Below, piece after piece: positions 5,661 to 63,457 of a DNA stretch of 64,000 bases. Below the pieces are notes generated by a model. That model made no database searches. It was not told the origin of the DNA and saw only the letters and a program-made list of their open reading frames with translations. The translations under genes and the position numbers were made by a program. Positions within the stretch are counted from its first letter, which is position 1; every line of letters starts with the position of its first letter. Location: IMG/VR virus record IMGVR_UViG_3300028864_000016, positions 124,001 to 188,000 of that record; one strand, written 5' to 3'.

Positions 5661-5698
5661 ATTAATTTATTTAAGTCTACATAAATCTATTCTTTTAA
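5661..5698 (-). repeat. Copy of the ~38-bp dispersed intergenic element
   Basis: attaatttatttaagtctacataaatctattcttttaa; 33/38 identical to the copy at 29693-29730. Confidence 0.8.
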
Positions 5699-5941
5699 AT
5701 TATAATTCACTTAAATTATACATTGGAACTAAAACTTCTTTATTATTTATGTATACGTACATTGCTTGATATCCTTCTCTAGAAACTCTAACTACTTGAC
5801 CAGATGGGTTGTGCCTAACGAATTGTGTTTGTCCATTTATCATAACTTATTCACTCCCTTTCTATATTGTTATTTTATACCAAATAATTTCAAAAGTCAA
5901 TTCTTATTTTTATTAATTTATTTAATTTTATATTGTTTCTT

Positions 5942-7456
5942 TTATATGACATTTTTTAAATTTTCATTATGCAATCCTTTTAATTTATTTGCTATATCAT
6001 ATTTTATATATTCTTCTGGGGTTAAGTATTCTATGTATTTGAAATGATGTCCTTTATGATAATTTCTTTCTTCTCGACAAACTCTAGATATTCCCCCATT
6101 ATTCATTATCACTCCAAAATCTTTTAAGCTTTTATTTGCACATTCAGTAGCAGATATGTATACTTGTTTTGTTTCCAAACAAATTACAGCTTTTGAATTG
6201 ATTAATTTATTGATTTCTGTAGCTTTTTTATATTTGTTAATATTAGCTTTTTCAGAGTCATAATTACACCAATTAAGCCTGTTACCCATTTTTAAGTATT
6301 TTTGTGCAGTAGAACCACTAATATTCATAGTTTTTCCTAAATCTGTAGCGAATTCAAAATTATATGTATTCCATATGTCGCAAGCTTCTTTAACTCTGTT
6401 AGAACAAGCAAATTCGTGGCATTTTAACCAATCAATAGCATTTAAATTTATTTGACTAGCTAAATTACTTTTTAATATATTATTTTTTATCCAATCTAAA
6501 TTACTTAATCTACAGTCTATAATAATATAGTTTTCTTCCTTGATATCATTTTGCAAAGCTAATTCTTTCTTAAATCTATCATTTTCTTGTTCATCTTCTA
6601 ACGTTCTACCGTTTTTCATTGTATAAAAAGATTTTTCATAATGTTGCTCTCCATTTGCTTCTATGATATATTTCTCATTATTATATTTAAAATAAAAATC
6701 ATATCTTTTAGAGTTTGACCATTTTGCCTTATATTCTGGTTTAAAAGTAAGATTTAATTGTTGCAATAAACTAAAAATAAATTTATTTGGATATGATAAT
6801 CCATCATTGCAACACCCTAATTTTTTACTATAAAAATGGTCTATTTTTCTTAATTTTTCACATCCACAATATATACATTTAAATAATATTTTTGAATGTG
6901 ACTGTGATTTGTATTTATATGCGTCTTCTTTATTAGACAACCATTGAATCATCCAAGGATCTGTTGTTGCAATATCATTTATACCTTTCATTATTGCACT
7001 ATGACCAAAACAGACAGCACAATTTTGTCCAGCTTTAAAATTACTTTCAAGCCTAATGCCAATATAGCCACATATAGGACATTTATATTCATAGGCTCTT
7101 ACATTTGTACCATTGCTAAGTTTTTGTCTTGTACACTTTATAATTTTAACTCCATTAACAGTCTCATTTAGCTTATAAAAATATTCATTAGTTCTTAATT
7201 TTAAAATATGAGAAAGTCCACATTTCTGAAAATCACCAGTTCTTATGAAATATTTTTCATCATTATAATATAGTTCTAATTGTTGTTTTTTAGAATTATA
7301 ATCAAATATAGTTATATATCCCTCTATATCATCATAAATGAATTTAACTTTATACCCTTTAGAATTCTTCCAATCTGTTACTTGCTTTTTTGAATTTGCT
7401 CCAATTCCTTGTTTGCATGGCAATTCTTCTAAAAATACTTTCCTAATAGTTATCAC
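5942..7456 (-). CDS. Free-standing homing-type endonuclease: zinc ribbons, PD-(D/E)xK/Vsr-like nuclease, NUMOD1-like C-terminus
   Basis: CPICG/CAVC/CIYCG zinc ribbons; RYDFY..IEANGEQHY..DRFKK nuclease; VICLETKQVYISATEC..ISRVCR tail. Confidence 0.7.
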   Translation of the reverse strand: MITIRKVFLEELPCKQGIGANSKKQVTDWKNSKGYKVKFIYDDIEGYITIFDYNSKKQQLELYYNDEKYFIRTGDFQKCGLSHILKLRTNEYFYKLNETVNGVKIIKCTRQKLSNGTNVRAYEYKCPICGYIGIRLESNFKAGQNCAVCFGHSAIMKGINDIATTDPWMIQWLSNKEDAYKYKSQSHSKILFKCIYCGCEKLRKIDHFYSKKLGCCNDGLSYPNKFIFSLLQQLNLTFKPEYKAKWSNSKRYDFYFKYNNEKYIIEANGEQHYEKSFYTMKNGRTLEDEQENDRFKKELALQNDIKEENYIIIDCRLSNLDWIKNNILKSNLASQINLNAIDWLKCHEFACSNRVKEACDIWNTYNFEFATDLGKTMNISGSTAQKYLKMGNRLNWCNYDSEKANINKYKKATEINKLINSKAVICLETKQVYISATECANKSLKDFGVIMNNGGISRVCREERNYHKGHHFKYIEYLTPEEYIKYDIANKLKGLHNENLKNVI

Positions 7457-8051
7457 TCCTTTTGATTAATAATTTTCCAACAACCTTTCTAACACCTAAT
7501 TTATTTATACGTTTTTCATATTGATAATCTGTCTCATAACTTAATCTTTGAATAAATACATCTACTTTTATGTTTCCATTTGATAATGTTTTTATATAAT
7601 TTGGATTTCCTCTGTCTGTTGCAATATATTCTATCCCGTTAATAATTAATTTGCTTCCAAATGGGATATCTTTTGGAACAGCAACCTGTCCTTCTTTTAC
7701 AGGTATTCCACTAGCAGTAATAAACTTATTGTTTCCACACTCATTATAAGTTGCTCCATAATAAGATATTATAAAAGTTTTCTCTTCCCATTCAGGTTCA
7801 TTTTTCTGTTGTTCTTTTAGTAATATTTTAGCTTTTTCATCTTTCTTTTTACCAAGTTCAATTCTATCTTTTTCAAATTGTTCTTGAATCGGATTAATTC
7901 CTAATCCAAATCTATCTTTATGTACCATTATATCTACATTAGCTTCTTCTTTAATATTATTCGCTAATGGTGTCATAGTGGCTGTTGGTATCGTAAATAG
8001 TAAACTACTTGATAATAATACCATAGACAGACACATTGTCCTATTTCGCAT
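7443..8051 (-). CDS. Secreted 3D-domain cell-wall protein (Sps/YorM-like putative lytic transglycosylase)
   Basis: N-terminal signal-like segment; TASG, VAVPKDIPFGS, ATDRG, VDVF. Confidence 0.85.
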   Translation of the reverse strand: MRNRTMCLSMVLLSSSLLFTIPTATMTPLANNIKEEANVDIMVHKDRFGLGINPIQEQFEKDRIELGKKKDEKAKILLKEQQKNEPEWEEKTFIISYYGATYNECGNNKFITASGIPVKEGQVAVPKDIPFGSKLIINGIEYIATDRGNPNYIKTLSNGNIKVDVFIQRLSYETDYQYEKRINKLGVRKVVGKLLIKRSDNY

Positions 8052-8086
8052 CTAATCAACTCACTTTCTCTTCTATATATGTTTTT

Positions 8087-8983
8087 TTATATACTCATTA
8101 ATTCTGTAAATTCTATAACTTTTCCAGTTTCATTTGCTATTTCAACTATATTGGTAGCAAGTTCTTGAACTGCTGAATTTGTTTGTTCCATGCATGCACT
8201 CATTGAAACACATCCATCATTTATACCTTCTATACGAGATATTCTAAGTACATTGCTTTCTTTTAATTTTTTACTATTTTCTTTCCCCGTTTCAGTTTTT
8301 TCAAGAATAACGTTAGCCATAACTTGTAATTCTTTTATAATTTGACTTATCATTATACTAGAATCTTTAGTTTCTTGTGCGAGTTTTTTAACTTCATTTG
8401 CAACAACTCCAAATCCTTTACCTGCTTCACCTGCTCTTGCAGATTCAATATTGGCATTTAATGATAATAAATTGGTTTGATTAGCTATGTCTTTAATCAC
8501 ATCTGTTATTTTATCAATGTCTTTCATTTTAACATGTAATTCATTTGCATTATTATTGATATCAGCTATAGCATCGTGAAATATTGCCATAACTCCACTA
8601 TTGTCTTTAGCACTTTCATAAGCAAGATTAACTTCTGAAGAAATATTAACTATATTCGCTGTTACTTCTTCTACCGTTGCACTTATTTCCTCCACTGAAC
8701 CTGCTTGACCTGTTATATTATTACTAATTATAGACATCTCTTTTAATAATTTTTCATTTGATTCGGATGTTGACTTCTTATATTCTTCGAATGTTTTATC
8801 TTTTTCAATTAATGTTATATGTAGTTCTTCATTTTGTAATTCCAGTTCTTTGATTTTACTATCTTTCTTTAATTCAAGTTCTTCTAGTTTATCATTCGTT
8901 TCCTTTTCTAAAGTTATTCTTAGTTCATTTAACCCTTTTTCATTTTTAAATAATTTTTTCATCATATTAATACACTCCCTCAT
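8087..8983 (-). CDS. Cytoplasmic methyl-accepting chemotaxis protein (signalling domain only)
   Basis: [37 protein letters not shown] hairpin tip; EEISATVEE and EQTNSAVQE methylation-like helices; no TM segment. Confidence 0.93.
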
Positions 8984-9100
8984 TAATTTATTACTTGTTG
9001 GCTTTCAATACTTTGTCAACGCTAAATTGTCAGGAACTTGTATTATGTTTAGTTTTATGTCATTAATACTTTTATCACCTCTGTTTATATTAATTTATTA

Positions 9101-9460
9101 TTAATCTTTTATATACCCACAATCACAACCATATTTATATACAGTTTCATATACTTCTCTACCTTGCATTTCTCCTCTTGGCTCGTCCCGCTTATCAATT
9201 ACAATTAATTCATCTCCACATTTGGGACATCTACTTAACTTTTCTGCAAATTCTTCTATTTCTCTTGTTAGTTCAACTATAAATTTTTTGGGATTATTAT
9301 TAACATCGTCTATTAATTCTTTTATCATCTGAATTGTTTCTCCTACTTCATAACAATCTCTATTTATTATTTGTATTAATTCATATTTATCCATAATATC
9401 CACTCCCACTCCTCTCTTATTCATCTTTAATTTCGATTTCTTTATTTCTATCAAACACAT
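9101..9460 (-). CDS. Hypothetical protein with zinc ribbon
   Basis: CPKCG and CDCG. Confidence 0.6.
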   Translation of the reverse strand: MCLIEIKKSKLKMNKRGVGVDIMDKYELIQIINRDCYEVGETIQMIKELIDDVNNNPKKFIVELTREIEEFAEKLSRCPKCGDELIVIDKRDEPRGEMQGREVYETVYKYGCDCGYIKD

Positions 9461-9662
9461 AGTGAGTATGTTCGTTTATTGTTATTTTACTTTGAAAATA
9501 AAATTTATTATTACAATTACCATTCATACATCTAGCTACAAACTCAGTATATTTAGTTCCATCTATTTCTACTAATTTATAATCATCTGTTAATTGATAT
9601 TTAGATTCTTTACATTCAGGGCAATATAATCTATTGTCCTTCAAAATTGCTTTTAATATCAT
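9417..9662 (-). CDS. Small zinc-ribbon hypothetical protein
   Basis: CPEC and CMNGNC. Confidence 0.55.
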   Translation of the reverse strand: MILKAILKDNRLYCPECKESKYQLTDDYKLVEIDGTKYTEFVARCMNGNCNNKFYFQSKITINEHTHYVFDRNKEIEIKDE

Positions 9663-9677
9663 CTTAATCCGCTTCCT

Positions 9678-10004
9678 TTATTCATATTCTTTATATGTAT
9701 TAATAAATAAGGTATTTAAATTATGTATTTCATCTTCATCTATAGATATATTATTATTTATATATCCTAATTTGTTTTTGTCTATTACTTGATAAACTAT
9801 AATACTATTATTATTCACAGCGGTTTCATCATATACTTCATCTGAAATAATAGATTTAAATATTAATTTGTTATTTTGTTTTTCTAATACGCAATATCTT
9901 AATTTACTAGAATTAGTTCCTTTTTCTAATATACAATAGATACTATCTTTTGAAGCGGTTATTTCTTGGATACTCATCTGCTTTCCATGATATATCACAT
10001 GCAT
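9678..10004 (-). CDS. Hypothetical protein
   Basis: 108-aa ORF overlapping the sigma-factor stop. Confidence 0.6.
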   Translation of the reverse strand: MHVIYHGKQMSIQEITASKDSIYCILEKGTNSSKLRYCVLEKQNNKLIFKSIISDEVYDETAVNNNSIIVYQVIDKNKLGYINNNISIDEDEIHNLNTLFINTYKEYE

Positions 10005-10594
10005 AATGATACCTCATCTTTTAGTTCTATTTGTAACTTCTTTTTAATTTGTTTTATTCTATAGCGAATGCATTCTCTAGTTTTATCATACATCCTTCCT
10101 ATTTCAGCGTAATTTAATCCTTTCATAAAGTGTAAATTAATCATATCTTGTTCTTGACTAGAAAAAGTTTTTAACACTTCTGATATTTTTTGATTAGTAA
10201 TATTTAATAATGCAGATTCTTCACAATTACAATTATCATCTTTAATTGTTTCAATCATTTGTAAGTCATCAGATTCATCAACTATACTATATATACTGCA
10301 AGTTTCAATATCTCCACCACGTTTTTGTCGTTTATCTCTTTTATATGTATCAAATATAATGTCTTTAATTACTTTTTTCGCATAAGGTACGAATGACATA
10401 TTCTGTGAAATGTCGTAATAATTATAAGCTTTAATTAACCCAATATATGCTATTTGAATCAAATCATCTTTTTCATAATGTGAACACCATTTAATTACAT
10501 CTTTTGTATGTGTCATTTTATCAAATTCTTTTACTACTTCATCTAATGTCATTTCTTTATTTATACCGTTTTTACATCTTATTAATTTTTTCAT
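9995..10594 (-). CDS. Sigma-70 family sigma factor (sporulation/SigH-like, regions 2 and 4)
   Basis: DDLIQIAYIGLIKAYNYYD..SFVPYA region 2; LNYAEIGRMYDKTRECIRYR region 4 HTH. Confidence 0.9.
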   Translation of the reverse strand: MKKLIRCKNGINKEMTLDEVVKEFDKMTHTKDVIKWCSHYEKDDLIQIAYIGLIKAYNYYDISQNMSFVPYAKKVIKDIIFDTYKRDKRQKRGGDIETCSIYSIVDESDDLQMIETIKDDNCNCEESALLNITNQKISEVLKTFSSQEQDMINLHFMKGLNYAEIGRMYDKTRECIRYRIKQIKKKLQIELKDEVSLCM

Positions 10595-10632
10595 TATTTA
10601 CTCTCCTTTTTTTATTTTAATTTGTTAATGTA

Positions 10633-10661
10633 ATAGTACTATATAATGGATATGTTGTCAA
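10633..10661 (-). promoter_or_regulatory. Sigma-A type promoter for the sigma-MCP-3D operon
   Basis: TTGACA-17nt-TACTAT, flanked on both sides by the repeated AYAAATTAA box. Confidence 0.85.
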
Positions 10662-10683
10662 TGTTTATTTATATTAATTTATT

Positions 10684-10950
10684 TTATTCTTCGTTATAAT
10701 CATATCTAACTTTATCAATTTCATAAACATCTTTATATTCAAATCTATATAAGTTATCATTCTGTATTAATTCTTCAAAATCAATAATTTCAATTCCATC
10801 TTGGTCAACTTTTTCTTTTAAAATCTCAAGAATTACATCTTCTAATAACTCTTTGTCCTCAATAATGCCTTCTTTAATTGTTATAATTGTATCTCCATTT
10901 AATTGAATATCTCCAATCCAGTATATAAACCTTACTATGTAATCAATCAT
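10684..10950 (-). CDS. Acidic hypothetical protein
   Basis: 88-aa ORF. Confidence 0.55.
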   Translation of the reverse strand: MIDYIVRFIYWIGDIQLNGDTIITIKEGIIEDKELLEDVILEILKEKVDQDGIEIIDFEELIQNDNLYRFEYKDVYEIDKVRYDYNEE

Positions 10951-11144
10951 TATTTATCATCTCCTTCTTTTGAATTACTTTTTATGTTTTCATAAATTGA
11001 TATACTTAAGAATAAAGCAACTATACTATCTATTCCGTTTGGATTTGCATTTCCATATGAGATCAACTCTGCAAATTGCCAACATATTGCTATTATCACA
11101 TATAAAAATATAAGACTTATTAAATAATCTAATCTTTTCCTCAT
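10950..11144 (-). CDS. Small two-TM membrane protein
   Basis: Two hydrophobic helices. Confidence 0.55.
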   Translation of the reverse strand: MRKRLDYLISLIFLYVIIAICWQFAELISYGNANPNGIDSIVALFLSISIYENIKSNSKEGDDK

Positions 11145-11243
11145 TATTATCTCTCCTTATATCTATTAATTTATTAAAACCTTATAAAATTTCTCCTTTA
11201 TTTAGATTTTGGATAATTTAAATTCATTTCACATTCAACTCCC

Positions 11244-23070: not shown

Positions 23071-24711
23071 TTATTTTATTATCTCAAAATCAACAATTTC
23101 AATCTGACCTGTATTATTATATGTATCCATAGTGCATTTGCCTATGATATTTGCTTTTAATGACTCATTTAACAATTGTTCTTTTAATGCATTTGTTGGG
23201 AACTTTTTATTGAATTTAATTCCATTTACAAAAAACACTATTCTTGTTCTTTTAATATCACTTTCAACTATGTTTAATTCTACATTTTCAAAAGCTATTA
23301 AAGGGGCATCTATCTTATTTCCAAACTCATTTTCTAATAATGCTAACTCATTTACTATGTATTCATCTATTTCTGATTCATCTAATATAAAATCTACTAG
23401 ATACTCTTTACTATCTACAACTTCTTTATCTTTATATAAAACATTTAAATATTCTTTTAATTTGTTTAAATTATCTTTTTTTAATTGATAACCACCCGCT
23501 TGAGCATGACCTTGTGAGAATATAACTAAATTACTATTAAGAATATCTAATCTTGTATCAGTTGAAATACTATCTATTCCTCTAAAACTTCCTCCAATAA
23601 TATCCTTTTCTCCATCAACATTTCTATATAACAATGTAGGGAGTTTGTATTTATCTTCAATTTTTTGTGCTACTAATCCAGTATGTGATTGATTTAATGT
23701 CTTTCCTACATCTAATATAATACACTTATCTTCTTCAGCAATATTAATTTTAGGTTCTATCTTTTTCAAAGCTGATTTAACTGCATTGTCCTGTTTAGCT
23801 TTAACATTTTTACACATCTTCGCTACTTCTAAACAAAAATCATAATCGTCTGATACAAAAGCTTGATACATTTTCATTTTCTCTTCTTGTGTTCCACTTC
23901 TAATTGTTCCATTTAATTTAGGAGCTATTACCCATCCGATTTTATCGATATTATATTTACCTTCTAAGTCATATTCATTTACTTCCATTAATGCTTTGAT
24001 AAATAGGTTATTTATTTCTTTAGTACCTTCATATACGAAATATCTAGTTTCTAACTCATGCAAGTCCATCATATCAGCAACATTACCTAATGCAACTAAA
24101 TCTTTATATTTACTTGACTTATCTTCAAATAGATAATCATCTAAAGCTTTTATAAATTTATAAGCAACTCCAGCCCCAGCTAGATTCTTATTTGCCACAT
24201 TTTTAGATAATTGATTATTTATTACTATTGCATCTTTACTATATCCACCATCTGAGTGATGATGATCTATAATAAGTACATCTATTCCTCTGTATTTCAA
24301 TTCCTTATGTTGTTTGTAATCATTGCTCGATGCGTCCGTTAATACTACAAGATTAACATTGTCTTCAATAATAATATCTTCTGATAAACCATGTTGTTTG
24401 TTCGTATGTATTTTTAATTCTATATCAGCATTAGGAAATGATTCTTTTATTCTGTTGAAAAATATAGCAAAGCTTGTCATTCCATCAACATCACAATCCC
24501 CTATTGTTACTATTTTGCTATTATTATTTAAATGTTTTAATAGTAACTCAATTCCTTCTTGCATATTATCATAATTATTATAATCTTCTATAACTAACTT
24601 ATCTAAATTAAATAAGTCCTTAGTTATACCCCTATTTTCTAAAACTGTTTCTACAGGTGTAAAAGTGTAATTATTACCTATTAATTTATATTTCATATAA
24701 TCATCCCTCAT
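23071..24711 (-). CDS. recJ: RecJ-like ssDNA exonuclease (DHH)
   Basis: GDCDVDG, IIDHH, ALGNVAD, APKLNG, GHAQAGG. Confidence 0.93.
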   Translation of the reverse strand: MRDDYMKYKLIGNNYTFTPVETVLENRGITKDLFNLDKLVIEDYNNYDNMQEGIELLLKHLNNNSKIVTIGDCDVDGMTSFAIFFNRIKESFPNADIELKIHTNKQHGLSEDIIIEDNVNLVVLTDASSNDYKQHKELKYRGIDVLIIDHHHSDGGYSKDAIVINNQLSKNVANKNLAGAGVAYKFIKALDDYLFEDKSSKYKDLVALGNVADMMDLHELETRYFVYEGTKEINNLFIKALMEVNEYDLEGKYNIDKIGWVIAPKLNGTIRSGTQEEKMKMYQAFVSDDYDFCLEVAKMCKNVKAKQDNAVKSALKKIEPKINIAEEDKCIILDVGKTLNQSHTGLVAQKIEDKYKLPTLLYRNVDGEKDIIGGSFRGIDSISTDTRLDILNSNLVIFSQGHAQAGGYQLKKDNLNKLKEYLNVLYKDKEVVDSKEYLVDFILDESEIDEYIVNELALLENEFGNKIDAPLIAFENVELNIVESDIKRTRIVFFVNGIKFNKKFPTNALKEQLLNESLKANIIGKCTMDTYNNTGQIEIVDFEIIK

Positions 24712-25741
24712 ATTTAAATTTACAATTATTATATAATTGCATAAAAACTTCTTTTCCTTTATCGCTTGGGCTTTGTTTTTTCTCTAATAAATCCAAGTTA
24801 TCATATATATAATAAACATTGCATAACCCTTTAAATTTCTTACATTCTATAAATATTTCTTCTAAAGTAATATCCTTATCAAAAGTTAGCACTATGTCTT
24901 TTCCTAATTTAAGTAATTTATTTAATTGTATTGGGCTAATACTATGTTTGCTAACTGCTAAACAATTATTAATTTCCATACTGTCTAATTGCATAACAAA
25001 CTTTTCAGCTTCTCCAACGAAAACTTCATCAGCAGATAATATATCAAAGTAATTCTCATACAATCCATATAAATAATACTCGCCATGATATGGATAATAG
25101 TAATAGTATTTTGGTATACCTCTAATTTTGAAATTTTCTTCTAATGTTCTACCTTTAAATGTTAACAGTTTTCCATCATCGTTTCTAATAGGGAAAACAA
25201 CTCTATTATCTAATATATCATAAGATACTCCAAACTTATTTTGAGTTAATTCGTTTATTCCATCATCTGAAAATAATTTACATTCATTTCTTATAAATCT
25301 TTCAATAAAGGTTTCGTTTAATATTGATTCTTCATAGTATAAATTTGATTGTTTTTTACTTATACTTCTTTTAAATTGTTTTAAGAAGTCATAACTAGAA
25401 CTTCTTTCTTGTTTTGTATCTATCCCATCGTATTTTAAGTTGCATATTTTACATACATAACTTATTGCTTGATTAAATTTACATCCTTGTAGGTACTCTA
25501 TTAGTGAAAATATATCTTTATATTCCTGTTTATTGTATTCATTATTTGTATGTATTACAGAAGATAATGATTTATTTAATTTAACTTGAAGGCTTGTAGG
25601 ATTATCACCATCTGGAGGTCTAGTTGATTGAACTCTTTTGTTAGGAATTGTTTTTATTCTATTACATCCTAAATCTTCAAGTATTTTTTCTATTTGAGTT
25701 GGATTATCTCTTAAAAATTCTTTAATTTCGTCCTTATTCAA
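24701..25741 (-). CDS. Phage DNA primase (TOPRIM)
   Basis: VVFPIRNDDGKLLTFKGR, VGEAEKFVM, LTFDKD; sits between helicase and recJ. Confidence 0.88.
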   Translation of the reverse strand: MNKDEIKEFLRDNPTQIEKILEDLGCNRIKTIPNKRVQSTRPPDGDNPTSLQVKLNKSLSSVIHTNNEYNKQEYKDIFSLIEYLQGCKFNQAISYVCKICNLKYDGIDTKQERSSSYDFLKQFKRSISKKQSNLYYEESILNETFIERFIRNECKLFSDDGINELTQNKFGVSYDILDNRVVFPIRNDDGKLLTFKGRTLEENFKIRGIPKYYYYYPYHGEYYLYGLYENYFDILSADEVFVGEAEKFVMQLDSMEINNCLAVSKHSISPIQLNKLLKLGKDIVLTFDKDITLEEIFIECKKFKGLCNVYYIYDNLDLLEKKQSPSDKGKEVFMQLYNNCKFKYEG

Positions 25742-29576: not shown

Positions 29577-29692
29577 AATATTTCTCTCCTTCTGCGTTGG
29601 TCGCTACCCTTTATATTTTTGTTAATTTATTCATAATACGCATTTTAACTTCTCGAGTTAAACTTAATGCAATTTTATACTTTTTATTTTCT

Positions 29693-31438: not shown

Positions 31439-31831
31439 TTATTTCTTATTAGTTTTATAAAAATCTTCATAAGATGCAATATCTATTTCTTTATGATATT
31501 CAATATATTTGCTTGTGTCGGTATTATTATTTATTCTTATAATTTTAGCATCTCCAACAACTATAATGCCATTGTTATTCTGATCTACAAATCTTAATCC
31601 ATCTGATTGACTTTCAGATTCTACATAAACATTCTTTAATATCCAACAATCCATAATAGTTCCACCAGATTCATTAAGTATTACATAGTCAGCCTTATTA
31701 GTAGTAAAGTAACCACCTTTTAATGCATTTCTATTCTCCCAACTAGCAAAACAACCAGTTAAGCTAAAACACATTACTCCTGTAACCATAATTAAACCTA
31801 TTTTCTTTTTAATATTTTTCATGTTATTCAC
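31439..31831 (-). CDS. Lipoprotein
   Basis: Basic N-terminus, hydrophobic stretch, lipobox SLTGC. Confidence 0.75.
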   Translation of the reverse strand: MNNMKNIKKKIGLIMVTGVMCFSLTGCFASWENRNALKGGYFTTNKADYVILNESGGTIMDCWILKNVYVESESQSDGLRFVDQNNNGIIVVGDAKIIRINNNTDTSKYIEYHKEIDIASYEDFYKTNKK

Positions 31832-35948: not shown

Positions 35949-36048
35949 TTCCTTTTCATTTTATATAATTTATTAAAAAGCAGATAAAACTAATATTTTA
36001 ACTGCTTGTACAAGTCTGTAAACCCAGTCATAGAGCCATTCTTAAATT

Positions 36049-36822: not shown

Positions 36823-37606
36823 ACATTTTATTTAAAATAGTTTGATAATGACAAGAACTTTCTAATGTAACTTTATTACTATTCATTGTTGATTGAATAA
36901 ACTCTTTTAAAGTAACCCATTTTGAATTTTTATTAGTAAAATTTGATATATCTATTTTACTTGGATCATTTGTTATATTCACAATTGCTCACATCCTTTT
37001 TAGTGTTTTATATTACTTTTGCAATTTAATAATTTCTAGCACTTTAGTTTTTGCGTCTATTTCAGAAAGTTGTGTATTATAATTAAATTGTTCGTCTTTC
37101 AAAACAAACAACATTTCAGCCCAGCTAAGTCCTCCACGGCTTGCTAACCTTTCTAATGTTTGTCCACAATGATTTATAATTGCCTGTTTTTCATGTGGTT
37201 TTATTATATCTAATTCAATATATTCTTTTGAATTTGTACCAAGTATCGGGAATTTATTCACCTTTTATTTCACTCCTTCTAAAATATTCCTTTTATAAAA
37301 ACTCTCCAGTAACCACATTAAATCCTATTTCTTTAGTTATGTTATAATTCGTTTTTAAACAATAGTCATCAAGACTTAGTTCCTCATCATCTAATGTCCA
37401 TTCCAATGTTCTAATTAACATTATACATGGAGCTAGAAAAAGACCTTTTTCTTCTTTACTGAATTCTGCATCATTTTTCAAACCTCCTACCAATTCTTTC
37501 ATACTTTTTAAATAATCACTTTTATATTTTTCAATTATTTCTTGAGATTTCATTTGCAATTCCTCCTATTTATTTTAATTTGTTAACTTACCATAAAAAC
37601 ATTATT

Positions 37607-37924
37607 CTATCGTGTTTTTAGTCTCATATTTAGACCAACTTTTTGTAATACATCTTGAACCTTATTTGAATTAAGCATTTGAGTCTTTTCTAATGATTCA
37701 CAGAAATCTTCAAATGTAGCCAACTTATCTAATGGATTCATTTCTGTTATATATTTTGGTTTAAATATATGTAATCCCTTATCTGATTTAACGATTATTT
37801 GTTGTTGTGTAAAATTTATAATTATGCCTTTCTTAATATAATAAGTATCTCTTGCGTCATTTTCATATGTAATTTTATAACTTTGTCCCTCTTTTATTCC
37901 ATATTCTTTATCTAAAAAATTCAT
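37607..37924 (-). CDS. Hypothetical protein
   Basis: 105-aa ORF; stop overlaps a repeat-element copy. Confidence 0.6.
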   Translation of the reverse strand: MNFLDKEYGIKEGQSYKITYENDARDTYYIKKGIIINFTQQQIIVKSDKGLHIFKPKYITEMNPLDKLATFEDFCESLEKTQMLNSNKVQDVLQKVGLNMRLKTR

Positions 37925-37990
37925 TTTGTCATTCTCCTTTATTATTTAATATTCTTTATAATTTGTTTAACTTCGATCAAATTCAAGACT

Positions 37991-38443
37991 TTAAAGTAAT
38001 TTATCCACTTCACATACTGGATTTTTCATATCTAAATCACTAATAGAATATACATATCCATTAAACGCTAAATGCTTATAATTAATACTATCTGCAACCA
38101 ATCTGCATTCTGAATAATCTCTTCCTAGAATTTTGCAACTATCAAAAACATCTCTCCAATGAATATTAACTAATTTCTTATTTTTATCTTCTATATAATC
38201 AATAAATCCCCCATATGCAATATCTAAAATATCTATACTACTATCAACTTTAGTTCCATCTTCTAATACTGCGAAAGTTCTATTCATTTGAGGATTACAA
38301 TAATAATATTTTATTTGTAACCATTTTGTATTTTCATTACCTATTCCTCCGCTTGTTAATCTATAATTATGAGGATATTTTTGTATAATCTTTTTTCTAT
38401 CTTTTAAAGCTTGTATTATTTCTTCGTAAGTCTTATATTCCAT
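37991..38443 (-). CDS. Hypothetical protein
   Basis: 150-aa ORF; stop overlaps a repeat-element copy. Confidence 0.65.
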   Translation of the reverse strand: MEYKTYEEIIQALKDRKKIIQKYPHNYRLTSGGIGNENTKWLQIKYYYCNPQMNRTFAVLEDGTKVDSSIDILDIAYGGFIDYIEDKNKKLVNIHWRDVFDSCKILGRDYSECRLVADSINYKHLAFNGYVYSISDLDMKNPVCEVDKLL

Positions 38444-38504
38444 ATTAATTCACTCCTTAATTTATTTTAATTTCTGCATAAAATTTCCATTTTAAGACAA
38501 TTTT

Positions 38505-39047
38505 CTATAATAAATTTGCTAAAATTTTAATTATATTTTTTAATTCTTTTATCTGATTATTTAATTTTGAATTTATTGCATTATCTATATCATTTTCTTC
38601 TTGCATTCTCATAATTTCTTTTTCTCTATTGGTCAATATATTATTTAGATCATCTTCTTTCTTAGCTTGTTCCATTGATTTATATTCTAATTCTGATATG
38701 TATGATTTTTGTTTATCTATATCATTTTCTAGTTTTTGTCTAAAATTACCTAATGATATATTTGCTAGTTTATATTCTTTATTTTCTTCTTCTAATGTAT
38801 CAATGTTATTTTTAGCATTAGTAAACCATTCATCTAATTGTCTTTTATCATCTTTTAATATCTCATTTTCTTTTTCAAGCCTAAAACATTCTAATTCATA
38901 ATCTGTTCCAGCAGGATATTGATTACCACATATTTTACTATCTGTACATTTTCCTTTTTTATTTTTAGGACATTTTTCGCTTTCTTGGTAACAGGTTTTA
39001 TTTTCCTTATCTATTGCATATTGTAATTGTTCTTCTGCATAATTCAT
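38505..39047 (-). CDS. Coiled-coil hypothetical protein with N-terminal Cys cluster
   Basis: CxxxSxKCxxxxxxxCxxxxxC then heptad-rich region. Confidence 0.65.
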   Translation of the reverse strand: MNYAEEQLQYAIDKENKTCYQESEKCPKNKKGKCTDSKICGNQYPAGTDYELECFRLEKENEILKDDKRQLDEWFTNAKNNIDTLEEENKEYKLANISLGNFRQKLENDIDKQKSYISELEYKSMEQAKKEDDLNNILTNREKEIMRMQEENDIDNAINSKLNNQIKELKNIIKILANLL

Positions 39048-39417
39048 AAATTTTACCTCTCTTTTTATTAATTTATTAAAATATATTATTCAAATTCCCA
39101 TCCATTTAAAATACAATTTTCCAACCCTTTTAATATGTATATAGCCCTATGTACTAATACCTCTTTAGCAAAAGCTTGACTCATAGGAATATCCCCTAAG
39201 TTGTTTTCTTGCTCATATTTTTGCTTCTCCCACATGATGTTTCTTCCATAATCTCTCGTATGTATTCTATTGATAATTTGCCATATGTATCCTTGGTCTT
39301 GTTTATATTTATCACAGAACTCTTCTATTCTCTCTTGAAGAAATTCTCCACTACACATTGTCATATCAACACCTCCATTTTTATTATTATTTATCTTAAT
39401 TTATTACCTTTAAGATT

Positions 39418-39446
39418 ATCTTACTACTTGTGCTAATTACTGTCAA
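39418..39446 (-). promoter_or_regulatory. Sigma-A type promoter
   Basis: TTGACA-17-TAAGAT with upstream AACAAATTAATGGAAA box. Confidence 0.85.
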
Positions 39447-40049
39447 CACTTATTTCCATTAATTTGTTTGTTTATATTTCATCCATATTATAGTCCTCTC
39501 TAATATAATCTATTAAATCATTAATAGTTTCCTTAATATGTTCATCATCTCTTAAAATAGGATGAATTTTAGCCATACATGAACCTTTTGCTCCTTCTGA
39601 TTTATATTTCTTATAGTTAAAATCTACCCACAACAAGGGCATTTTTGTTAGGTTTTTAGTTAATAATCTTTGTAATAGTTTCATTTATTTTTCACTCCAA
39701 TCTTTTAAAATTAAATTTTTATCTACTTGTCTATAAAATATTATTCGTTTAAAATTTTATTAATATATGGACTTTTGGTATGTTTAGTTCCATCTATTTT
39801 ATCAGCCACACATGAAAAAGCTTCAAATATTCCATCCCTATATCCCTGTACATATAACTTTTTATCATTTTCTAAAATTAATAGTTTGTCACAAACTTTT
39901 TCAAATTCATTTTCAAATTTGTGTAACAGTTCTTTTAATGATTCATTCTCATTCATTTTTTATTTCATCCTTTCTTAATTCATTTTCAGTTAAACCTAAA
40001 GTTTTATATGCTTGTACTATTTCTAATTTAGGGCAGTATGCCCTATAAC

Positions 40050-46792: not shown

Positions 46793-46960
46793 CGTTACCT
46801 ATGATTTATATAACTTCCTAAATCATTGTTTAATTCCTTATTCAACGTGTCCTATTTTGCATTATCACTAATACTACTTTAGTTTGATATGACACTCCAA
46901 AGGCTTAACTTCGGGCATAACGAACCCTACACCTCAGCATTATCGTTTTAGTGTGATTTA
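46772..46960 (-). ncRNA. TnpB omegaRNA (right-end RNA) scaffold plus predicted guide
   Basis: GTGTAGGGTTCGTTATGCCCGAAGTTAAGCCTTTGGAGTG..GGACACGTTGAATAAGGAA..GTAACGG, resembling clostridial IS607/IStron right ends; guide would start at 46791. Confidence 0.65.
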
Positions 46961-57486: not shown

Positions 57487-57556
57487 CTTCTTTACACTTT
57501 CTAATTAATAATAAATCCCCTTAAAGCACGTCTTTTAAAAAGTCATATTTTACCAA

Positions 57557-57895: not shown

Positions 57896-57896
57896 T

Positions 57897-58208
57897 TTAT
57901 TTTTCCTCCTTAGTATTAGATTTTAAATTTCTTTCATCCAATATCTTTTTTATTTTATATTCTACATTTAACCTTTCAAAATCACTTAATATAAATCCCC
58001 ATAACTTCATAAGTTCATCATTACTCATATTCTCTAAATTTTCTTGTTTTAGAAAGTCTTCTAAACTAACTGCATTATTTGAAGATTCTATTGGCTCTAT
58101 CCTTTTTAAACAATAGGAGTCCATTTCATTAACCCCTAAGTTTTTACATGTGCCAGTTTCTCTATTGCTGTCACACTTCATATTCCAACACTTTAACCAT
58201 TCTGACAT
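57897..58208 (-). CDS. Hypothetical protein with N-terminal Cys cluster
   Basis: CWNMKC..C..C. Confidence 0.6.
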   Translation of the reverse strand: MSEWLKCWNMKCDSNRETGTCKNLGVNEMDSYCLKRIEPIESSNNAVSLEDFLKQENLENMSNDELMKLWGFILSDFERLNVEYKIKKILDERNLKSNTKEEK

Positions 58209-58649
58209 TCATTTTTGCCTCCTTTTAAAATATCACTTTTTAGTTTGACTTATTTAATTTATCTTTTAACGTTCTATTTTCATTTTCTAAACTCCATGTG
58301 ACAAGTTCTATTGAAGTTAACCATAATACTTGAGATATTAACATTATCCATATTCCTGTACCTAAATTAGTTCTTACTCCTACTAAATATGCTATTAAAA
58401 AACTTGGTATAAAACAAACAGAACCCAATATTGTACCAATTAATTGTTTTTTATCTCTAAATTTAAACATTACTTTTCATCTCCTTTACTTTCTTTTACA
58501 ATTTCGATTACTGCATAAGTACCTTTTTTATATTCTTGTGACAATTCATCGTTATGTATTTTGATTAACTTTTTCACAAATTCATCACTTAACATACTTA
58601 CATCTGCCATCTCCTTATGTAATTTATATTAATTTGTTTGTCTAAACTA

Positions 58650-58678
58650 ATATTAGCATAAACTACCAATCAATGCAA
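58650..58678 (-). promoter_or_regulatory. Sigma-A type promoter
   Basis: TTGCAT-17-TAATAT, repeat box both upstream and downstream. Confidence 0.7.
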
Positions 58679-58747
58679 TAGTAATTCTATTAATTTATTT
58701 AAATATTTTATAAAAATAAGGAAGTATTATTTTACTTCCTTGCTTGA

Positions 58748-59362
58748 TTAATTTTCTTTCAACTTAATTTCTTTTGGCTTCATTATAAATTCTAAATAAT
58801 GTTTCCTACAATATCCTTTAGCATAATATTTTCTGCCACATTCATTAATATTACAATGTTTTATTTTAACATCATTAGAATACAAAGGATCTCCATGATT
58901 ATACCATTTATTATAATGACTTCTACAGTAACCATTACCATAAGATTTTTCATTGCAACTACTTACTTTACAAATTGTTGGATATTTTATTCTTCTTTCA
59001 ATAAGTGTTATCTTCCCATGGTTTAAATACTGATGATAATGTCTTATGCAATATCCTTTAGCTAAAATTATATCATTGCACCCTTCTACTTTACAGATAG
59101 AAATATTGTCATTCCCTAATTCATTCTTTAATTCTAGATTTTTAAATCTTTGTTTATTATAATGATATTTACAAAGGGTTTTAGAGTAAACATTTTTATC
59201 ACAACCATCAATAGAACATCTACTATCTTTAATAATGGGGTTTACTTCTAATTCAGGAGTTAGTCTGCCATGATTCTTTATTTGCAAATAGTGCTTTCTA
59301 CAATATTCCTTTAAACCATATCGTTCTTTATTACAATTATCTGCCTTACATTTTTCTTTCAT
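58748..59362 (-). CDS. Basic protein made of five C-x4-C-x9/10-C-x2-H-Y zinc-finger-like repeats, no nuclease domain
   Basis: Five repeats read directly from the translation. Confidence 0.8.
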   Translation of the reverse strand: MKEKCKADNCNKERYGLKEYCRKHYLQIKNHGRLTPELEVNPIIKDSRCSIDGCDKNVYSKTLCKYHYNKQRFKNLELKNELGNDNISICKVEGCNDIILAKGYCIRHYHQYLNHGKITLIERRIKYPTICKVSSCNEKSYGNGYCRSHYNKWYNHGDPLYSNDVKIKHCNINECGRKYYAKGYCRKHYLEFIMKPKEIKLKEN

Positions 59363-59482
59363 AATATATTTTCACCTCACAGTAATAGTATTATCTATTA
59401 TTTAAGGTTTATACATTTTCGATTAACATGCAATAAAATATTCCCATAAATTGCAAATTTTAAAAGGTTTTTCAGAAAAGTT

Positions 59483-59507
59483 AAAAGGCTACAACTTAGT
59501 CATAACC
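59483..59507 (-). terminator. Intrinsic terminator
   Basis: GGTTATGAC-TAA-GTTGTAGCC-TTTT. Confidence 0.65.
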
Positions 59508-59822
59508 TCATTATTGTTTTTCTTATTTTTATCTAACTTCTAAAACTTTCCACAAATTTTTAATAAAAGACTCTCCTACATTACCACTTTCATATAAATA
59601 TCTTACTCTATTCCTATATTCTTCTTTTCCTTCATATGGGTTATTTATTATATCCGTAGCATTAGCATAAGCGATAGATTTTCTTCTTTTCCCATGTAAA
59701 TTTAATCCAAGCATATAAGAATCAATTTCTTTTTCAAAGGCTTCATAAGTGATCAAATTTTTTAAATTTTGCTTTAATTGGTCTATAAGTTCTTTATTTT
59801 CTAAATATCTTTCTTTTAACAT

Positions 59823-60689
59823 TTAAAGCCCTCTTTTATATTTCCATTGATTTTTTATTTTTTCTTGTTCATAAGCTTCTCTATTGTCTATTTCTCTCCA
59901 AGTGTCTTCATAATCATTACTACCATAAAAATTACAATCATTATATTCTTTTCTATACCAATCGATAAATGGACACATCACACCTGATTCAATGCAATCT
60001 AGTGAAAGGTCTCTAAAATTAGATACTCTTTTAAAAGCTTGATTGTTAATCATTAATATCCCATCAGTATCTTTTGACATTAAAATTTTATCATTGTCAA
60101 AAACTTTATTTAATTCAGTAATAATTTCTTTGTTATTATAATTATAATCATGTGATTCTTCTTCTAGTTCAGTTTCCACATCTAATATCAATTTAAAAAT
60201 ACCTTTTCCTATATGTTCAAATAATCTCAATCTATTATTGTTACTAAATTTTATTTTTCCACTTTCTAAATCCTCTAAATTGAAATCATCTTGGCATATA
60301 AATTCAATCCATCTATTTTCATTATTACAATGTACGTGTAAATCCTCAATATATTTTGGAGCAGAACACTCTATTATATCTTCAACTAGCCCACCATATT
60401 CATCTATTGATTTTATAAAACTATAAAAAGGAATTATTCTCATTTCTTTTGATGCTATTCGTTTTAATCTTTTATAGACTTCATATAACAATCTTATTTG
60501 ATTTATATAATTTTCAGTTTCTTCTCTTTGGATTTCAACTTCTTTTTTATACATTTTCTCAATAAGCTCATTCTTGTTAAGTTTTTTTATATCTTCTTCA
60601 GTTATATGATTTCTTAACAAATACCTAGTTATATCATAATTATCTTTTAAAATTACTGCTAGTTGTTCAAAATCTTTTATATTCATCAC
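59823..60689 (-). CDS. Hypothetical protein
   Basis: 288-aa ORF. Confidence 0.7.
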   Translation of the reverse strand: MMNIKDFEQLAVILKDNYDITRYLLRNHITEEDIKKLNKNELIEKMYKKEVEIQREETENYINQIRLLYEVYKRLKRIASKEMRIIPFYSFIKSIDEYGGLVEDIIECSAPKYIEDLHVHCNNENRWIEFICQDDFNLEDLESGKIKFSNNNRLRLFEHIGKGIFKLILDVETELEEESHDYNYNNKEIITELNKVFDNDKILMSKDTDGILMINNQAFKRVSNFRDLSLDCIESGVMCPFIDWYRKEYNDCNFYGSNDYEDTWREIDNREAYEQEKIKNQWKYKRGL

Positions 60690-60748
60690 TTCACCTCATT
60701 AGTTTTTATAATAAAATTATAACACATCCTAAATACCATTTCCTTATA

Positions 60749-61153
60749 TTAATTAACATAGACACAATATTTTACGATTTTATTTAATAAATTTTTCATA
60801 TATCCCATATCACATTTTTGTTCAACATGTTCTATATTACCCTCTAAAACCTTATCTCCAACGGTTAACCTAATGTCTCTTCTTTTAATTATTATCATTA
60901 GATTAAGCAATATTTTATATAATTCTTTTTCAGTATATAATATTAATTTTTCTTCTTTATAAGAATATCTACCGACATTAATTCTTTTATCTATAGAAAT
61001 TTCATAATTTTCGTCTATATTCATAACATATGCTATCGCAATACTTTCATCTTCAATTCCTAAGATCAACTTCCCTATTTCTTCTTCTTTAACGATAATG
61101 ACATTATCTTCTGATCCAAACCATTGTTCATAAACTTCTTTATAACTTTTCAC
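60749..61153 (-). CDS. Hypothetical protein
   Basis: 134-aa ORF. Confidence 0.6.
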   Translation of the reverse strand: MKSYKEVYEQWFGSEDNVIIVKEEEIGKLILGIEDESIAIAYVMNIDENYEISIDKRINVGRYSYKEEKLILYTEKELYKILLNLMIIIKRRDIRLTVGDKVLEGNIEHVEQKCDMGYMKNLLNKIVKYCVYVN

Positions 61154-61169
61154 CTATAACACTCCAATC

Positions 61170-61961
61170 TTATAACTTAATAGACTTAGCTCCAGTTTCA
61201 ATATTATATCCTTTATTTTCTAAATAATCATATGCATCACTAATTATTGTTTTAGATGAATTACATTTTAATGTACATATTTCTATATTAGAAAACTTAT
61301 TTCGTAAAGCATTAAAATATTTTATGGTTTCAGTGATATCCTCTTTGGTCATCATTTTTATTATAATACACTTATGAATTCCATTTACTATTTGAATTGA
61401 ATTATTATCAATATCATCCATTGATGTGACATTTAAAATAAATAATTCTGAACTAAATATTTTATCTTCTAATTTTTCTTTTTCTATAATTTCTTCAAAT
61501 AGATTTTTTCTTCTTGGAATAAATATTTCTATATTGCCATTGTCTATTTCTGTAATTCCTGCCAAATCATTTTTATTCATACTTTTTAATTCTGGACGTT
61601 GTTTAATCATTTTATTATAAATGTAATCAGGTAAAGACTCTCGTTTAAATACCTTATATTCATAACCATATTTTTTATCAAAGAAACAAATTGAATATTC
61701 TTGATTATTATCTTTATCAATTAAATAAACTCTATCGGTATTACTGTCTGATGTTTCTATAAGCCATTTATTTGAAATATTTTTTAATTTAAAATTATCT
61801 TTATTTAATAAATATTCTACCCTTTCCTTATGTCTATCAGTAACTATATTATTACTAGAAATATTAATCTCCATCACAAATTCACCCTTCCACATTTTTA
61901 TATATTTATTATTATACCAATTAATGTAAATAATATACAATAAGAGCTGATATAAAATCAA
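61170..61961 (-). CDS. Hypothetical protein (likely start at MEINISS)
   Basis: ORF; GGAAGGGTG RBS-like sequence before the internal ATG. Confidence 0.65.
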   Translation of the reverse strand: MILYQLLLYIIYINWYNNKYIKMWKGEFVMEINISSNNIVTDRHKERVEYLLNKDNFKLKNISNKWLIETSDSNTDRVYLIDKDNNQEYSICFFDKKYGYEYKVFKRESLPDYIYNKMIKQRPELKSMNKNDLAGITEIDNGNIEIFIPRRKNLFEEIIEKEKLEDKIFSSELFILNVTSMDDIDNNSIQIVNGIHKCIIIKMMTKEDITETIKYFNALRNKFSNIEICTLKCNSSKTIISDAYDYLENKGYNIETGAKSIKL

Positions 61962-61975
61962 CTCCTATAAACCAT

Positions 61976-62548
61976 TTATATTGCTTTAGTAACTTTTATA
62001 TCCATGGTCTCTTCAAAGCTTTTTACTAATAGAACTACCATAGATAGTTTCTTTTCTCCATATATTTTATCAATAACCTCTTTAAAATCATTATAAACTA
62101 ATCTATTGTTTTTACCATATCTATCTATTAATAAATCAAATATTCTATTCTTAGCTAATTCTGATAAAGATATTCTTGAAATATTATTATCTCTACAAAA
62201 TATCATAGTCTTATTATAAATCTTTTCTTTGGTTAAATTAGAATCTAAAATAGTTTCATTATTGTTGTTTAATTTATCAATAATATCTAAAAATGTTTTA
62301 TCAATAGGTAGCTGAATATTCTCAAAATCAATAATCATTTTTTCTCTATTTATATCAGTCCATTTAATTATATTTAGGTTATTTAACTTTACCCCATATC
62401 GTGATAATATAAATATTGCTTTATCTTCATTTGTGCAATCTAAGTTGTCTAGCATATTATAAAACTCATTTAAATTCTTGTAATCAACTTTTCTCACTCT
62501 TTCCATTGCTATTTTTTCAATATCTTCTTTATTCATTTTAATACACAT
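61976..62548 (-). CDS. Hypothetical protein
   Basis: 190-aa ORF. Confidence 0.65.
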   Translation of the reverse strand: MCIKMNKEDIEKIAMERVRKVDYKNLNEFYNMLDNLDCTNEDKAIFILSRYGVKLNNLNIIKWTDINREKMIIDFENIQLPIDKTFLDIIDKLNNNNETILDSNLTKEKIYNKTMIFCRDNNISRISLSELAKNRIFDLLIDRYGKNNRLVYNDFKEVIDKIYGEKKLSMVVLLVKSFEETMDIKVTKAI

Positions 62549-62616
62549 CCTTTTAATTTATTTCATACTTATCATTTCCATTATTATAGAAATTATTTAT
62601 TTAGTATGTATTTTAT

Positions 62617-63366
62617 TTATAATAAATTATAATATTTTTCCTCTGCTTCCTTTCTAACTCTTATCGCATCTTCTTTATCTAAATATGTGCCTAAATAAAT
62701 AACTTTTTTATTAGCAACAATTTTTGCCATCCATTTTCCATATTTTTTATTTAAATAAACACCTTTGTATCCACTTGTGTTTGTTTTTGGAGTTTTATTA
62801 TGTTTTGAATTTTTTACTTGTGTTGTTATTATAAGATTGTCTTTTCTATAATTAAGACAGTCTCTGTCTCTATGAGCAATTATATACCCTACTGGAACTT
62901 CCATATTTATCAAGAATCTTCTCAAAGAAATGAATTTTCTATCTATAACACAACTTACTTCAGTTTTTCCTGTTTTCTTTATGGATGCGAACCATTTATA
63001 TTGTTTTATCAAATTTACATCGTCTAAATCAATTATTACTCTTGCTGTTTCAATATTATTGCTACAAATTACTATTTCTGCATAGTCATTATATATAATC
63101 ATATCATTAGTACAAGAATTATCCGTCACAGTTCTTCTAGTCGTTCTTTTATCTGATTTCTCTTTTATATATTCAGCATGTTCATTTGTTTCTATTTTAA
63201 ATCCTTCACTTTTTAAATAGGTTAGAATATCATTTATTTTATTTGAATTAGTATATTCTTTTAATTTCTTATAAACCTCTTTATTGTTTAATATATCAGT
63301 CTTACTTATTTTACTTCCTAATTTTCTTACTAAATACCATTTTAATTCCGATTTCATATGTATCAA
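62617..63366 (-). CDS. HNH-AP2 homing endonuclease-like protein
   Basis: AHRDRDCLNYRKDNL..N HNH; TSGYKGV..KWMAKI..YLGTY..EDAIRVRKEAE AP2. Confidence 0.85.
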   Translation of the reverse strand: MIHMKSELKWYLVRKLGSKISKTDILNNKEVYKKLKEYTNSNKINDILTYLKSEGFKIETNEHAEYIKEKSDKRTTRRTVTDNSCTNDMIIYNDYAEIVICSNNIETARVIIDLDDVNLIKQYKWFASIKKTGKTEVSCVIDRKFISLRRFLINMEVPVGYIIAHRDRDCLNYRKDNLIITTQVKNSKHNKTPKTNTSGYKGVYLNKKYGKWMAKIVANKKVIYLGTYLDKEDAIRVRKEAEEKYYNLL

Positions 63367-63406
63367 CCTCTCTTTATTTTCTTAATTTGTTGAACTCTAT
63401 GATATT

Positions 63407-63435
63407 AGTATAATATTTATCTTTTACTTTGTCAA
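63407..63435 (-). promoter_or_regulatory. Sigma-A type promoter
   Basis: TTGACA-17-TATACT, repeat boxes at 63382 and 63445. Confidence 0.85.
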
Positions 63436-63457
63436 CATATTTCTATTAATTTATTTC

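Follow-up and report, generated by a model that had tools for sequence, protein, structure and literature searches.

What reads the short, AT-rich word that stands in front of so many genes of a large uncultured phage? The stretch analysed here, called the window, comprises 64,000 nucleotides (bases 124,001-188,000) of the 218,173-bp IMG/VR virus record IMGVR_UViG_3300028864_000016 (hereafter G000), which was assembled from peat metagenomes and is estimated to be 88% complete. Open reading frames (ORFs) of any size in the window all lie on the minus strand, and the G+C content is about 25%. A preliminary description had noticed a strand-biased element of about 38 bp repeated at gene junctions, and had offered three readings of it: the operator of a master regulator, a promoter of a phage sigma factor or a recombination site. 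We followed the element, whose core is AAYAAATTAA and which we call the box, through the window, the whole record and related phages. The operator is the reading we favour, on account of a MrpR/SroF-family protein encoded outside the window and of a placement and orientation like those of the repeated element of Bacillus phage SPbeta (SPBRE); the sigma promoter and the recombination site fared poorly. The box would then be an SPBRE-type operator of a MrpR/YopR/SroF-family repressor that has expanded genome-wide, a tentative interpretation to which we give not quite an even chance.

The box and its placement

The exact core occurs 61 times on the minus (coding) strand of the window and never on the plus strand, compared with 8.8 ± 2.8 copies, and at most 18, in dinucleotide shuffles. 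The repetition and the shared orientation noted in the preliminary description were thus borne out, and all 30 positions that it listed carry a minus-strand box or a one-mismatch version of it (the latter at 35965, 37958 and 53133). Its list, however, was an under-count. Across the whole record there are 210 exact copies, where Markov models of order 1-4 predict about 28. Their orientation follows gene direction, plus in the structural arm at 28-115 kb and minus elsewhere, and 195 of the 210 run with the local genes. Although the ORF calls leave 15% of the genome non-coding, 166 copies are intergenic or at gene edges. Boxes stand in front of about half of the phage gene starts and occur in every module, be it early, replication or structural, the last with 21 intergenic copies. 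Gene-upstream regions hold 143 exact sense cores, compared with 15 antisense ones and 17 in a reversed control, and one-mismatch variants are essentially unenriched there, indicating that the core is very sharp. The other 44 copies lie within genes. With gene ends trimmed, 36 in-gene sense copies were found where 29.2 ± 3.7 were predicted from the encoded proteins, and no antisense copy was found where 2.0-4.4 were expected. Sense copies at the level set by the proteins argue against an RNA cleavage signal; the in-gene counts do not separate an operator from a promoter.

The core is followed on its 3′ side by a weaker extension, Y-A-G/T-A-A, and no conserved sequence was found on its 5′ side when all copies were pooled. 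TACATA is nominally enriched ahead of boxes with the core only, but the window count of ATACATAA, 20 against 14 ± 3.5 by chance, shows no excess, and a second upstream motif was rejected. Comparison of orthologous intergenic sites with relatives gave too few alignable sites to be useful. The general unit is the 10-nt core, lengthened to about 20 nt at promoters. The palindrome-plus-box composite of 38 bp, first described as the repeated unit, is real but forms a sub-class: the pattern TAAAR-N5-7-WTTTW-N7-11-AAYAAATTA has 12 strict matches in the window where 0.06 would be expected, and every one is on the minus strand. About 17-20 composites are present genome-wide, restricted to about 120-214 kb and with constant internal spacing, and the composite is found in the relatives G001 and G005 too. 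The copies at 5661 and 29693 agree with the reported identity of 33 in 38 positions between copies 24 kb apart.

The distance from the end of the core to the start codon peaks at 15-30 nt, the distance from the preceding stop codon is broad, and in about 81 copies the core lies 0-20 nt from the ribosome-binding site (RBS). Five slightly overlapping classes can be distinguished among the 166 intergenic copies. Nineteen precede a sigma-A-type −35 hexamer by about 10 nt and have a conserved long form of about 20 nt (AAATAAATTAAtAgAAATAAg); 18 lie between a sigma-A-type promoter and the RBS; 17 are composites; 62 are RBS-proximal with the core alone conserved; and 52 fall outside all other groups. 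The position between a stop codon and the next RBS that had been reported for every copy applies to most of them, but not to the 19 upstream of promoters. The choice at Y depends on location: mostly AAC between promoter and RBS, and mostly AAT upstream of promoters and in core-only copies.

A loose regular expression for sigma-A promoters shows no strand bias in this AT-rich genome; we therefore used stricter scoring with a reverse-strand control. The typical cassette runs box - TTGACA - 17 nt - TAnnnT - about 6-15 nt - box - RBS, and within cassettes the functional blocks alone are conserved, the spacers being unconserved. Some promoter-upstream boxes come directly after terminator hairpins. 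The early arm (genome 1-19 kb) contains about ten head-to-head pairs of boxes, 50-60 bp apart with a promoter between them, in which the upstream copy is inverted. The inverted copies of this arm, 11 in number, have no RBS or gene after them, and their placement around early promoters agrees with a DNA-binding site and with neither a promoter nor an RNA signal.

Some boxes (window 29600-29631; about 3432-3480 in locus L011; G000 7495, 9133 and 10580, minus strand) precede short conserved G+C-richer stretches instead of an RBS. Examples are GGTAGCGACCAACGCAGAAGGAGAG, found in the window and nearly repeated in L011, and ACTCACCT...GGAGTTAAGG of the early arm. They resemble small structured leaders; within the window, Rfam returned no match to them.

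A recombinase-fold repressor gene and the SPbeta element

Outside the window, at G000 203028-204185, the phage encodes a 385-aa protein that matches the Pfam family MrpR_N_CB (PF22822) with 33.5 bits against a cut-off of 27. All 20 of its homologues (20/20) match PF22822, and many have a precomputed match to MrpR_C_cat (PF22823). A fold search with its AlphaFold model (mean predicted local distance difference test score 77) returned MrpR, YopR and SroF as the top seven PDB matches (8a0a, 9rd5, two chains of 9rgl, two chains of 8bj6, and 8bpz), with E values from 4e-9 to 7e-7. True recombinases (XerA, integron and lambda integrases) ranked lower, at 5e-5 and weaker. Searching PDB sequences with the protein or its family profile gave no match, and PF00589 did not match it in a genome scan that found two true tyrosine integrases. 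Only the Pfam model and the fold search are decisive for the assignment to the MrpR/SroF family.

The gene directly preceding it encodes a YopQ-like protein of 466 aa (G000 204175-205575; E=5e-5, with the LDGxHR motif inside the match). Immediately past the MrpR-like gene come three tandem TTGACA promoters, each then followed by a box, and five more boxes lie in the divergent control region of the helix-turn-helix (HTH) and YopQ-like genes. The order HTH, HTH, small ORF, YopQ-like, MrpR-like, PemK-domain recurs in seven related loci (L096-L102). In six of the seven, the MrpR-like gene is followed by one for a PemK/MazF-domain protein of 250-275 aa; it is absent in the short L101, and a small ORF intervenes in L096. 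The arbitrium system of phi3T and SPbeta acts through the host MazEF (PMC10769878), and the phage-borne PemK-domain gene beside the MrpR-like gene may be a related link.

Both SPbeta and G000 have a recombinase-fold repressor gene after a YopQ-like gene, and both have a YonO-type polymerase. The replication and nucleotide-metabolism module in the window (anaerobic ribonucleotide reductase NrdD, DnaE-type polymerase, RecJ-like exonuclease, primase, DnaB helicase, Sak4-like AAA protein and C5 methyltransferase) is syntenic with yorG-yorL/mtbP of SPbeta. No close phage genome was found by megablast of the polymerase region against GenBank phages; at the protein level the phage is related to Clostridioides phage pCD1602_4 and to large Bacillus siphoviruses. 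The phage is a temperate, distant relative of SPbeta with a Clostridium-type host, because it encodes a YonO homologue, a YopQ-like/MrpR-like module and integrases, and one homologue of its MrpR-like protein comes from Clostridium beijerinckii.

In SPbeta, chromatin affinity purification sequencing (ChAP-seq) peaks of MrpR coincide with SPBRE at ten promoter regions (PMC10516654). The SPBRE that we derived from the SPbeta record, A[CT]AAA[AT]AATATGTAT, has 12 copies genome-wide, and no other high-copy word was found in that phage. It is sense to the downstream gene in seven of the seven upstream regions examined. Its sites are of three kinds: within the spacer or −10 of promoters of the form TAGACA...TATAAT, 7 nt ahead of the −35 (aimR and yonX), or 2-6 nt before the Shine-Dalgarno (SD) sequence (yonX, yopV and yopM). 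The SPBRE-promoter-SPBRE-RBS arrangement of yonX is the same cassette as that found at 10617-10683 and 63382-63455 of the window. Measured from its 5′ end, the element stands about 20-22 nt ahead of the −35 in SPbeta, G000 and the relative G002 alike. SPBRE and the box are alike in being asymmetric, AT-rich, near-invariant, in gene sense and spread over the phage genome. They are also alike in their sites, which lie ahead of the −35, between the −10 and the RBS, or at both, box-promoter-box-RBS cassettes included. In sequence, however, the 5′ AYAAA(W) and the choice of C or T at Y are the only shared part, and the 3′ halves differ.

The 3′ half of the element also differs between SPbeta and phi3T (bioRxiv 10.1101/2025.11.27.690993). 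SroF, of the same family as MrpR, is a monomer that clamps up to 24 bp of an asymmetric operator; its sites are scattered over the phage genome, and the motifs differ among phages (bioRxiv 10.1101/2025.11.27.690993). Monomeric reading of an asymmetric operator in the manner of SroF would explain the strict orientation, the near-invariance and the lineage-specific 3′ halves of the box.

The related phages have their own box variants, together with the same lysogeny module and the same architecture. G001 has the same box as G000; G002 has AAYAAAATATTAAA in 117 copies; the C. beijerinckii contig (locus L096) has AAYAAAATATA; and G005 has AAYAAATTA with different extensions. The genomes are mosaic: RecJ is 92% identical between G000 and G001 but the adjacent polymerase 46%, and the polymerase is 87% identical between G000 and G005 but the MrpR-like protein 33%. 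A screen for a reader of the box, based on proteins more conserved in G001, which has the same box, than in G005, revealed no DNA-binding candidate and only this mosaicism.

If the box is an SPBRE-type operator, the MrpR-like protein, which we infer to bind it, would in the prophage state clamp the long-form boxes of about 20 nt lying about 10 nt upstream of the host sigma-A −35. It would also occupy the second box, between the −10 or start site and the ribosome site, and the promoter would be shut. Since the 10-nt core has spread to about half of the gene starts, in all modules, repression or a block to read-through would be applied gene by gene over 218 kb, and this genome-wide repression would be released all at once on induction.

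Several observations weigh against the operator reading. The box has about 166 intergenic copies in all modules compared with the 12 SPBREs of SPbeta, an approximately 15-fold difference, and the late operon of SPbeta contains no SPBRE. Only about 35-55 of the 166 intergenic copies, after subtraction of the reverse-strand control, lie near a recognisable sigma-A promoter; unlike SPBRE, most copies lack such a promoter and consist of the 10-nt core only. The 62 RBS-proximal copies conserve the core without its extension, a pattern that sits badly with a reader spanning about 24 bp. Independently of these objections, the G000 system differs from SPbeta in its inverted upstream copies, its additional palindrome-plus-box class and its anaerobic Clostridium-type host. 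The MrpR-like protein is too diverged from YopR of SPbeta for pairwise sequence detection, the comparison being marginal (BLASTP E=0.21; hhalign E=0.018, 2.5% probability). Finally, MrpR-like proteins with no more than 33-61% identity to that of G000 still have the AAYAAATTA core beside them, and one at 58% goes with another 3′ half, so that the type of box does not follow how similar the repressors are overall. With regard to the more than 100 promoter-less core-only copies, we infer that they either serve as partial, auxiliary or road-block sites of the repressor, or have their core read by a second factor.

The C1 repressor of phage P1 resembles parts of this arrangement. Like the proposed system, it is a monomeric repressor with an asymmetric operator, of about 17 bp, at more than a dozen sites across a large plasmid-prophage genome, serving many transcription units. 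However, C1 has an unrelated fold and an order of magnitude fewer sites, and its operators are not tied to ribosome sites.

Possible alternative readers of the core

The obvious candidate for a second reader is the YonO-like polymerase, because the promoter sequence of YonO is not yet known (PMC5467207). The homologue in G000 has 926 aa and is encoded outside the window (G000 37266-40046, plus strand; L060:266-3046). A whole-genome search with SPbeta YonO missed it, and pairwise BLASTP found it (E=1e-22; some 600 aa aligned at 24% identity). DFDSD, the metal-binding motif predicted for the homologue, aligns with DNDGD of YonO, and G002 carries a 48%-identical copy. A 770-aa protein of phrog_5156, without a Pfam family (G000 23375-25687, minus strand; L059:4375-6687), was ruled out as YonO, as it has no similarity to it.

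The core could accordingly be the promoter or initiator of a single-subunit RNA polymerase of the YonO type. Transcription would start in or at the box and yield a short-leader transcript for each gene or small group, and the repressor operator would overlap it at the long-form copies. We regard this as unlikely, although it is the likeliest of the alternatives. A shade more doubtful still is the version in which the operator evolved to overlap a YonO-type promoter or initiator, so that one word both silences the prophage and drives gene-by-gene transcription. In addition to the presence of the polymerase gene, the form of the core agrees with this reading: it is near-invariant, strand-specific and without an upstream partner, and it is anchored 15-30 nt before start codons in all temporal modules. 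Viruses with their own RNA polymerase place a short, sharp, strand-specific word before many genes, as seen in the T7-type 23-bp promoters of single-subunit phage polymerases and in giant-virus gene-start motifs such as AAAATTGA of mimivirus. Such motifs differ between related viruses, as the box does, with variant words at the same places in the related phages. Sense copies are tolerated inside genes and antisense ones are absent there, and the core-only class lacks a conserved extension; these points, too, are in keeping with such a promoter.

However, SPbeta YonO uses a single late promoter upstream of yonK (PMC5467207), and there is no SPBRE there. The inverted copies upstream of early promoters have no RBS or gene after them, and boxes flank sigma-A promoters on both sides at SPBRE-like positions. 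In this the box is unlike the gene-start motifs of T7 and mimivirus, as its copies flank host-type promoters on both sides and are sometimes inverted. A further difference is that one late promoter serves the only YonO enzyme studied. Furthermore, no YonO homologue was detected in the 59%-complete record of G005, which has the same architecture.

A function in the mRNA is less likely again, and we consider it improbable. The core would be a 5′-untranslated-region (5′-UTR) element before the SD sequence, acting as a translation enhancer, a stabiliser or a site at which a phage endoribonuclease cuts polycistronic transcripts at gene junctions. Its strict sense orientation, its anchoring 0-20 nt from the RBS in about 81 copies, its position at gene junctions within operons and its presence within the 5′ UTR of transcripts from sigma-A promoters all suit such an element. 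In contrast, the 19 copies upstream of promoters, some right after terminator hairpins, would have little or no RNA carrying them to an RBS, and the early region has 11 inverted copies. A cleavage site would predict depletion of the core in coding sequences, and none is seen; moreover, its architecture is identical to that of the SPbeta DNA operator proven by ChAP-seq (PMC10516654).

The promoter of a phage sigma factor, one of the readings offered at the outset, has very little probability in our judgement. The window does encode a 199-aa sigma factor of the extracytoplasmic function (ECF) type with regions 2 and 4 (9995-10594, minus strand), behind a sigma-A-type early promoter that is flanked by two boxes; the core holds a TAnnnT-like hexamer, TAAATT, and the composite class has an upstream TTAAAA block. 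Against this, no conserved −35-like element was found at a fixed spacing from 75 RBS-proximal copies, and the TTAAAA block lies at 21 nt from the core, only some 17 copies having it. The SD sequence begins 0-5 nt after the core at 24 intergenic sites, and a core acting as −10 would start transcription inside or after the SD sequence. No homologue of the sigma factor was detected in the records of G002 (79% complete, 117 boxes), G005 or G001, which are 34-79% complete and have the same architecture.

Least probable of all is the remaining early proposal, that the repeats are recombination sites or mobile regulatory cassettes exchanging small ORFs between genomes: the high mosaicism noted above would suit it, and in run X18 there are contigs of a related phage in which a short match to the box or the composite adjoins other sequence, but the sides of these joints are about 21 nt, a short-side kind known to arise from repeats, spacers inside cassettes are unconserved, and homology breakpoints with G005 and L010 lie at gene boundaries without favouring boxes. 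Of 38 ends of high-scoring segment pairs, 5 (13%) had a box no more than 40 nt away, compared with 25% for random gene boundaries; the sample is small. The promoter early stem-loop (PeSL) cassettes of T4-type phages resemble the boxes as promoter-containing repeats between small ORFs in mosaic genomes. Unlike them, the box unit is a word of 10-20 nt, not a stem-loop plus promoter, and in the small test above the breakpoints with relatives do not match the boxes.

The recombinase-fold repressors of SPbeta-type phages have been characterised only recently, and those known come from Bacillus phages that have about ten operators. Here an element of this kind stands at about half of the gene starts of a 218-kb phage of an anaerobic Clostridium-type host, and relatives have their own variants. 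If, as in the favoured operator reading, the repressor reads all copies, a whole genome would be silenced gene by gene by a monomeric DNA clamp, a logic unlike that of classical switch regions. If there is a second reader, the box would give direct access to the promoter that YonO-type polymerases use. In both cases, a sharp core with a lineage-specific extension is a clean system for studying DNA reading by recombinase-fold repressors, and core and extension may help to predict immunity groups among uncultured phages.

Positions of the copies and neighbouring features

Table 1. Box copies, promoter cassettes and composites in the window, numbered from its first base
Feature	Start	End	Strand	Detail or basis
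Exact AAYAAATTAA, 61 copies	72	63455	-	about 45 intergenic; count vs shuffles
Box-promoter-box cassette before phage sigma gene	10617	10683	-	AATAAATTAA, 12 nt, TTGACA, 17 nt, TACTAT, 6 nt, AACAAATTAA, 9 nt, AGGAGAG, ATG
Long-form box AATAAATTAATAGAAATATG, TTGACA-N17-TATACT, box AACAAATTAA, RBS of gene 62617-63366	63382	63455	-	terminator-like hairpin and T-run just beyond 63455
Terminator, box, TTGCAT...TGCTAATAT promoter, box, RBS	58629	58699	-	sequence read
Box AACAAATTAATGGAAATAAGTG, TTGACA...TAAGAT promoter, box AATAAATTAA, RBS	39396	39468	-	sequence read
Box, promoter-like TTGCAA...TTAATATAAG, box, RBS of gene 31439-31831	31853	31938	-	sequence read
Long-form box AATAAATTAATAGAAATAGTA directly upstream of TTGACT-N..-TACTTAAT	46737	46746	-	RAGATH-18 RNA just upstream, same strand
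Long-form box AATAAATTAACATAAATATG directly upstream of TTGACA	31434	31443	-	sequence read
Composite: TAAAA-N-TTTTA palindrome, 9-10 nt, box	73	106	-	strict pattern match
Composite copy	5663	5697	-	sequence read and strict pattern match
Composite copy	11167	11200	-	sequence read and strict pattern match
Composite copy	14739	14772	-	sequence read and strict pattern match
Composite copy	17984	18017	-	sequence read and strict pattern match
Composite copy	29695	29729	-	sequence read and strict pattern match
Composite copy	31219	31252	-	sequence read and strict pattern match
Composite copy	34127	34161	-	sequence read and strict pattern match
Composite copy, core with one mismatch at last base (AATAAATTAT)	35966	36000	-	sequence read and strict pattern match
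Composite copy	49951	49984	-	sequence read and strict pattern match
Composite copy	53708	53742	-	sequence read and strict pattern match
Composite copy	56052	56084	-	sequence read and strict pattern match

The RNA beside the long-form box and TTGACT promoter of Table 1 is a full-length RAGATH-18 (Rfam RF03064; window 46834-46903, minus strand) that scored 73.5 bits, the gathering score being 44.9. RNA runs cover 7-8% of the window, as contigs that yielded no transcript ends; those of X18 and X19 look like DNA of a relative that is about 92% identical.

Three paralogous ORFs of 504-646 aa (window 5942-7456; G000 188371-190311 and 190356-191933; all minus strand) belong to phrog_4538 and have HNH/homing-endonuclease segments, which suggests that endonucleases of a free-standing or intron type have spread through this genome. 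The window also encodes a 298-aa protein (8087-8983, minus strand) with the signalling domain of methyl-accepting chemotaxis proteins (PF00015, E=1e-30), which is an unusual cargo for a phage and is 74% identical in G001.

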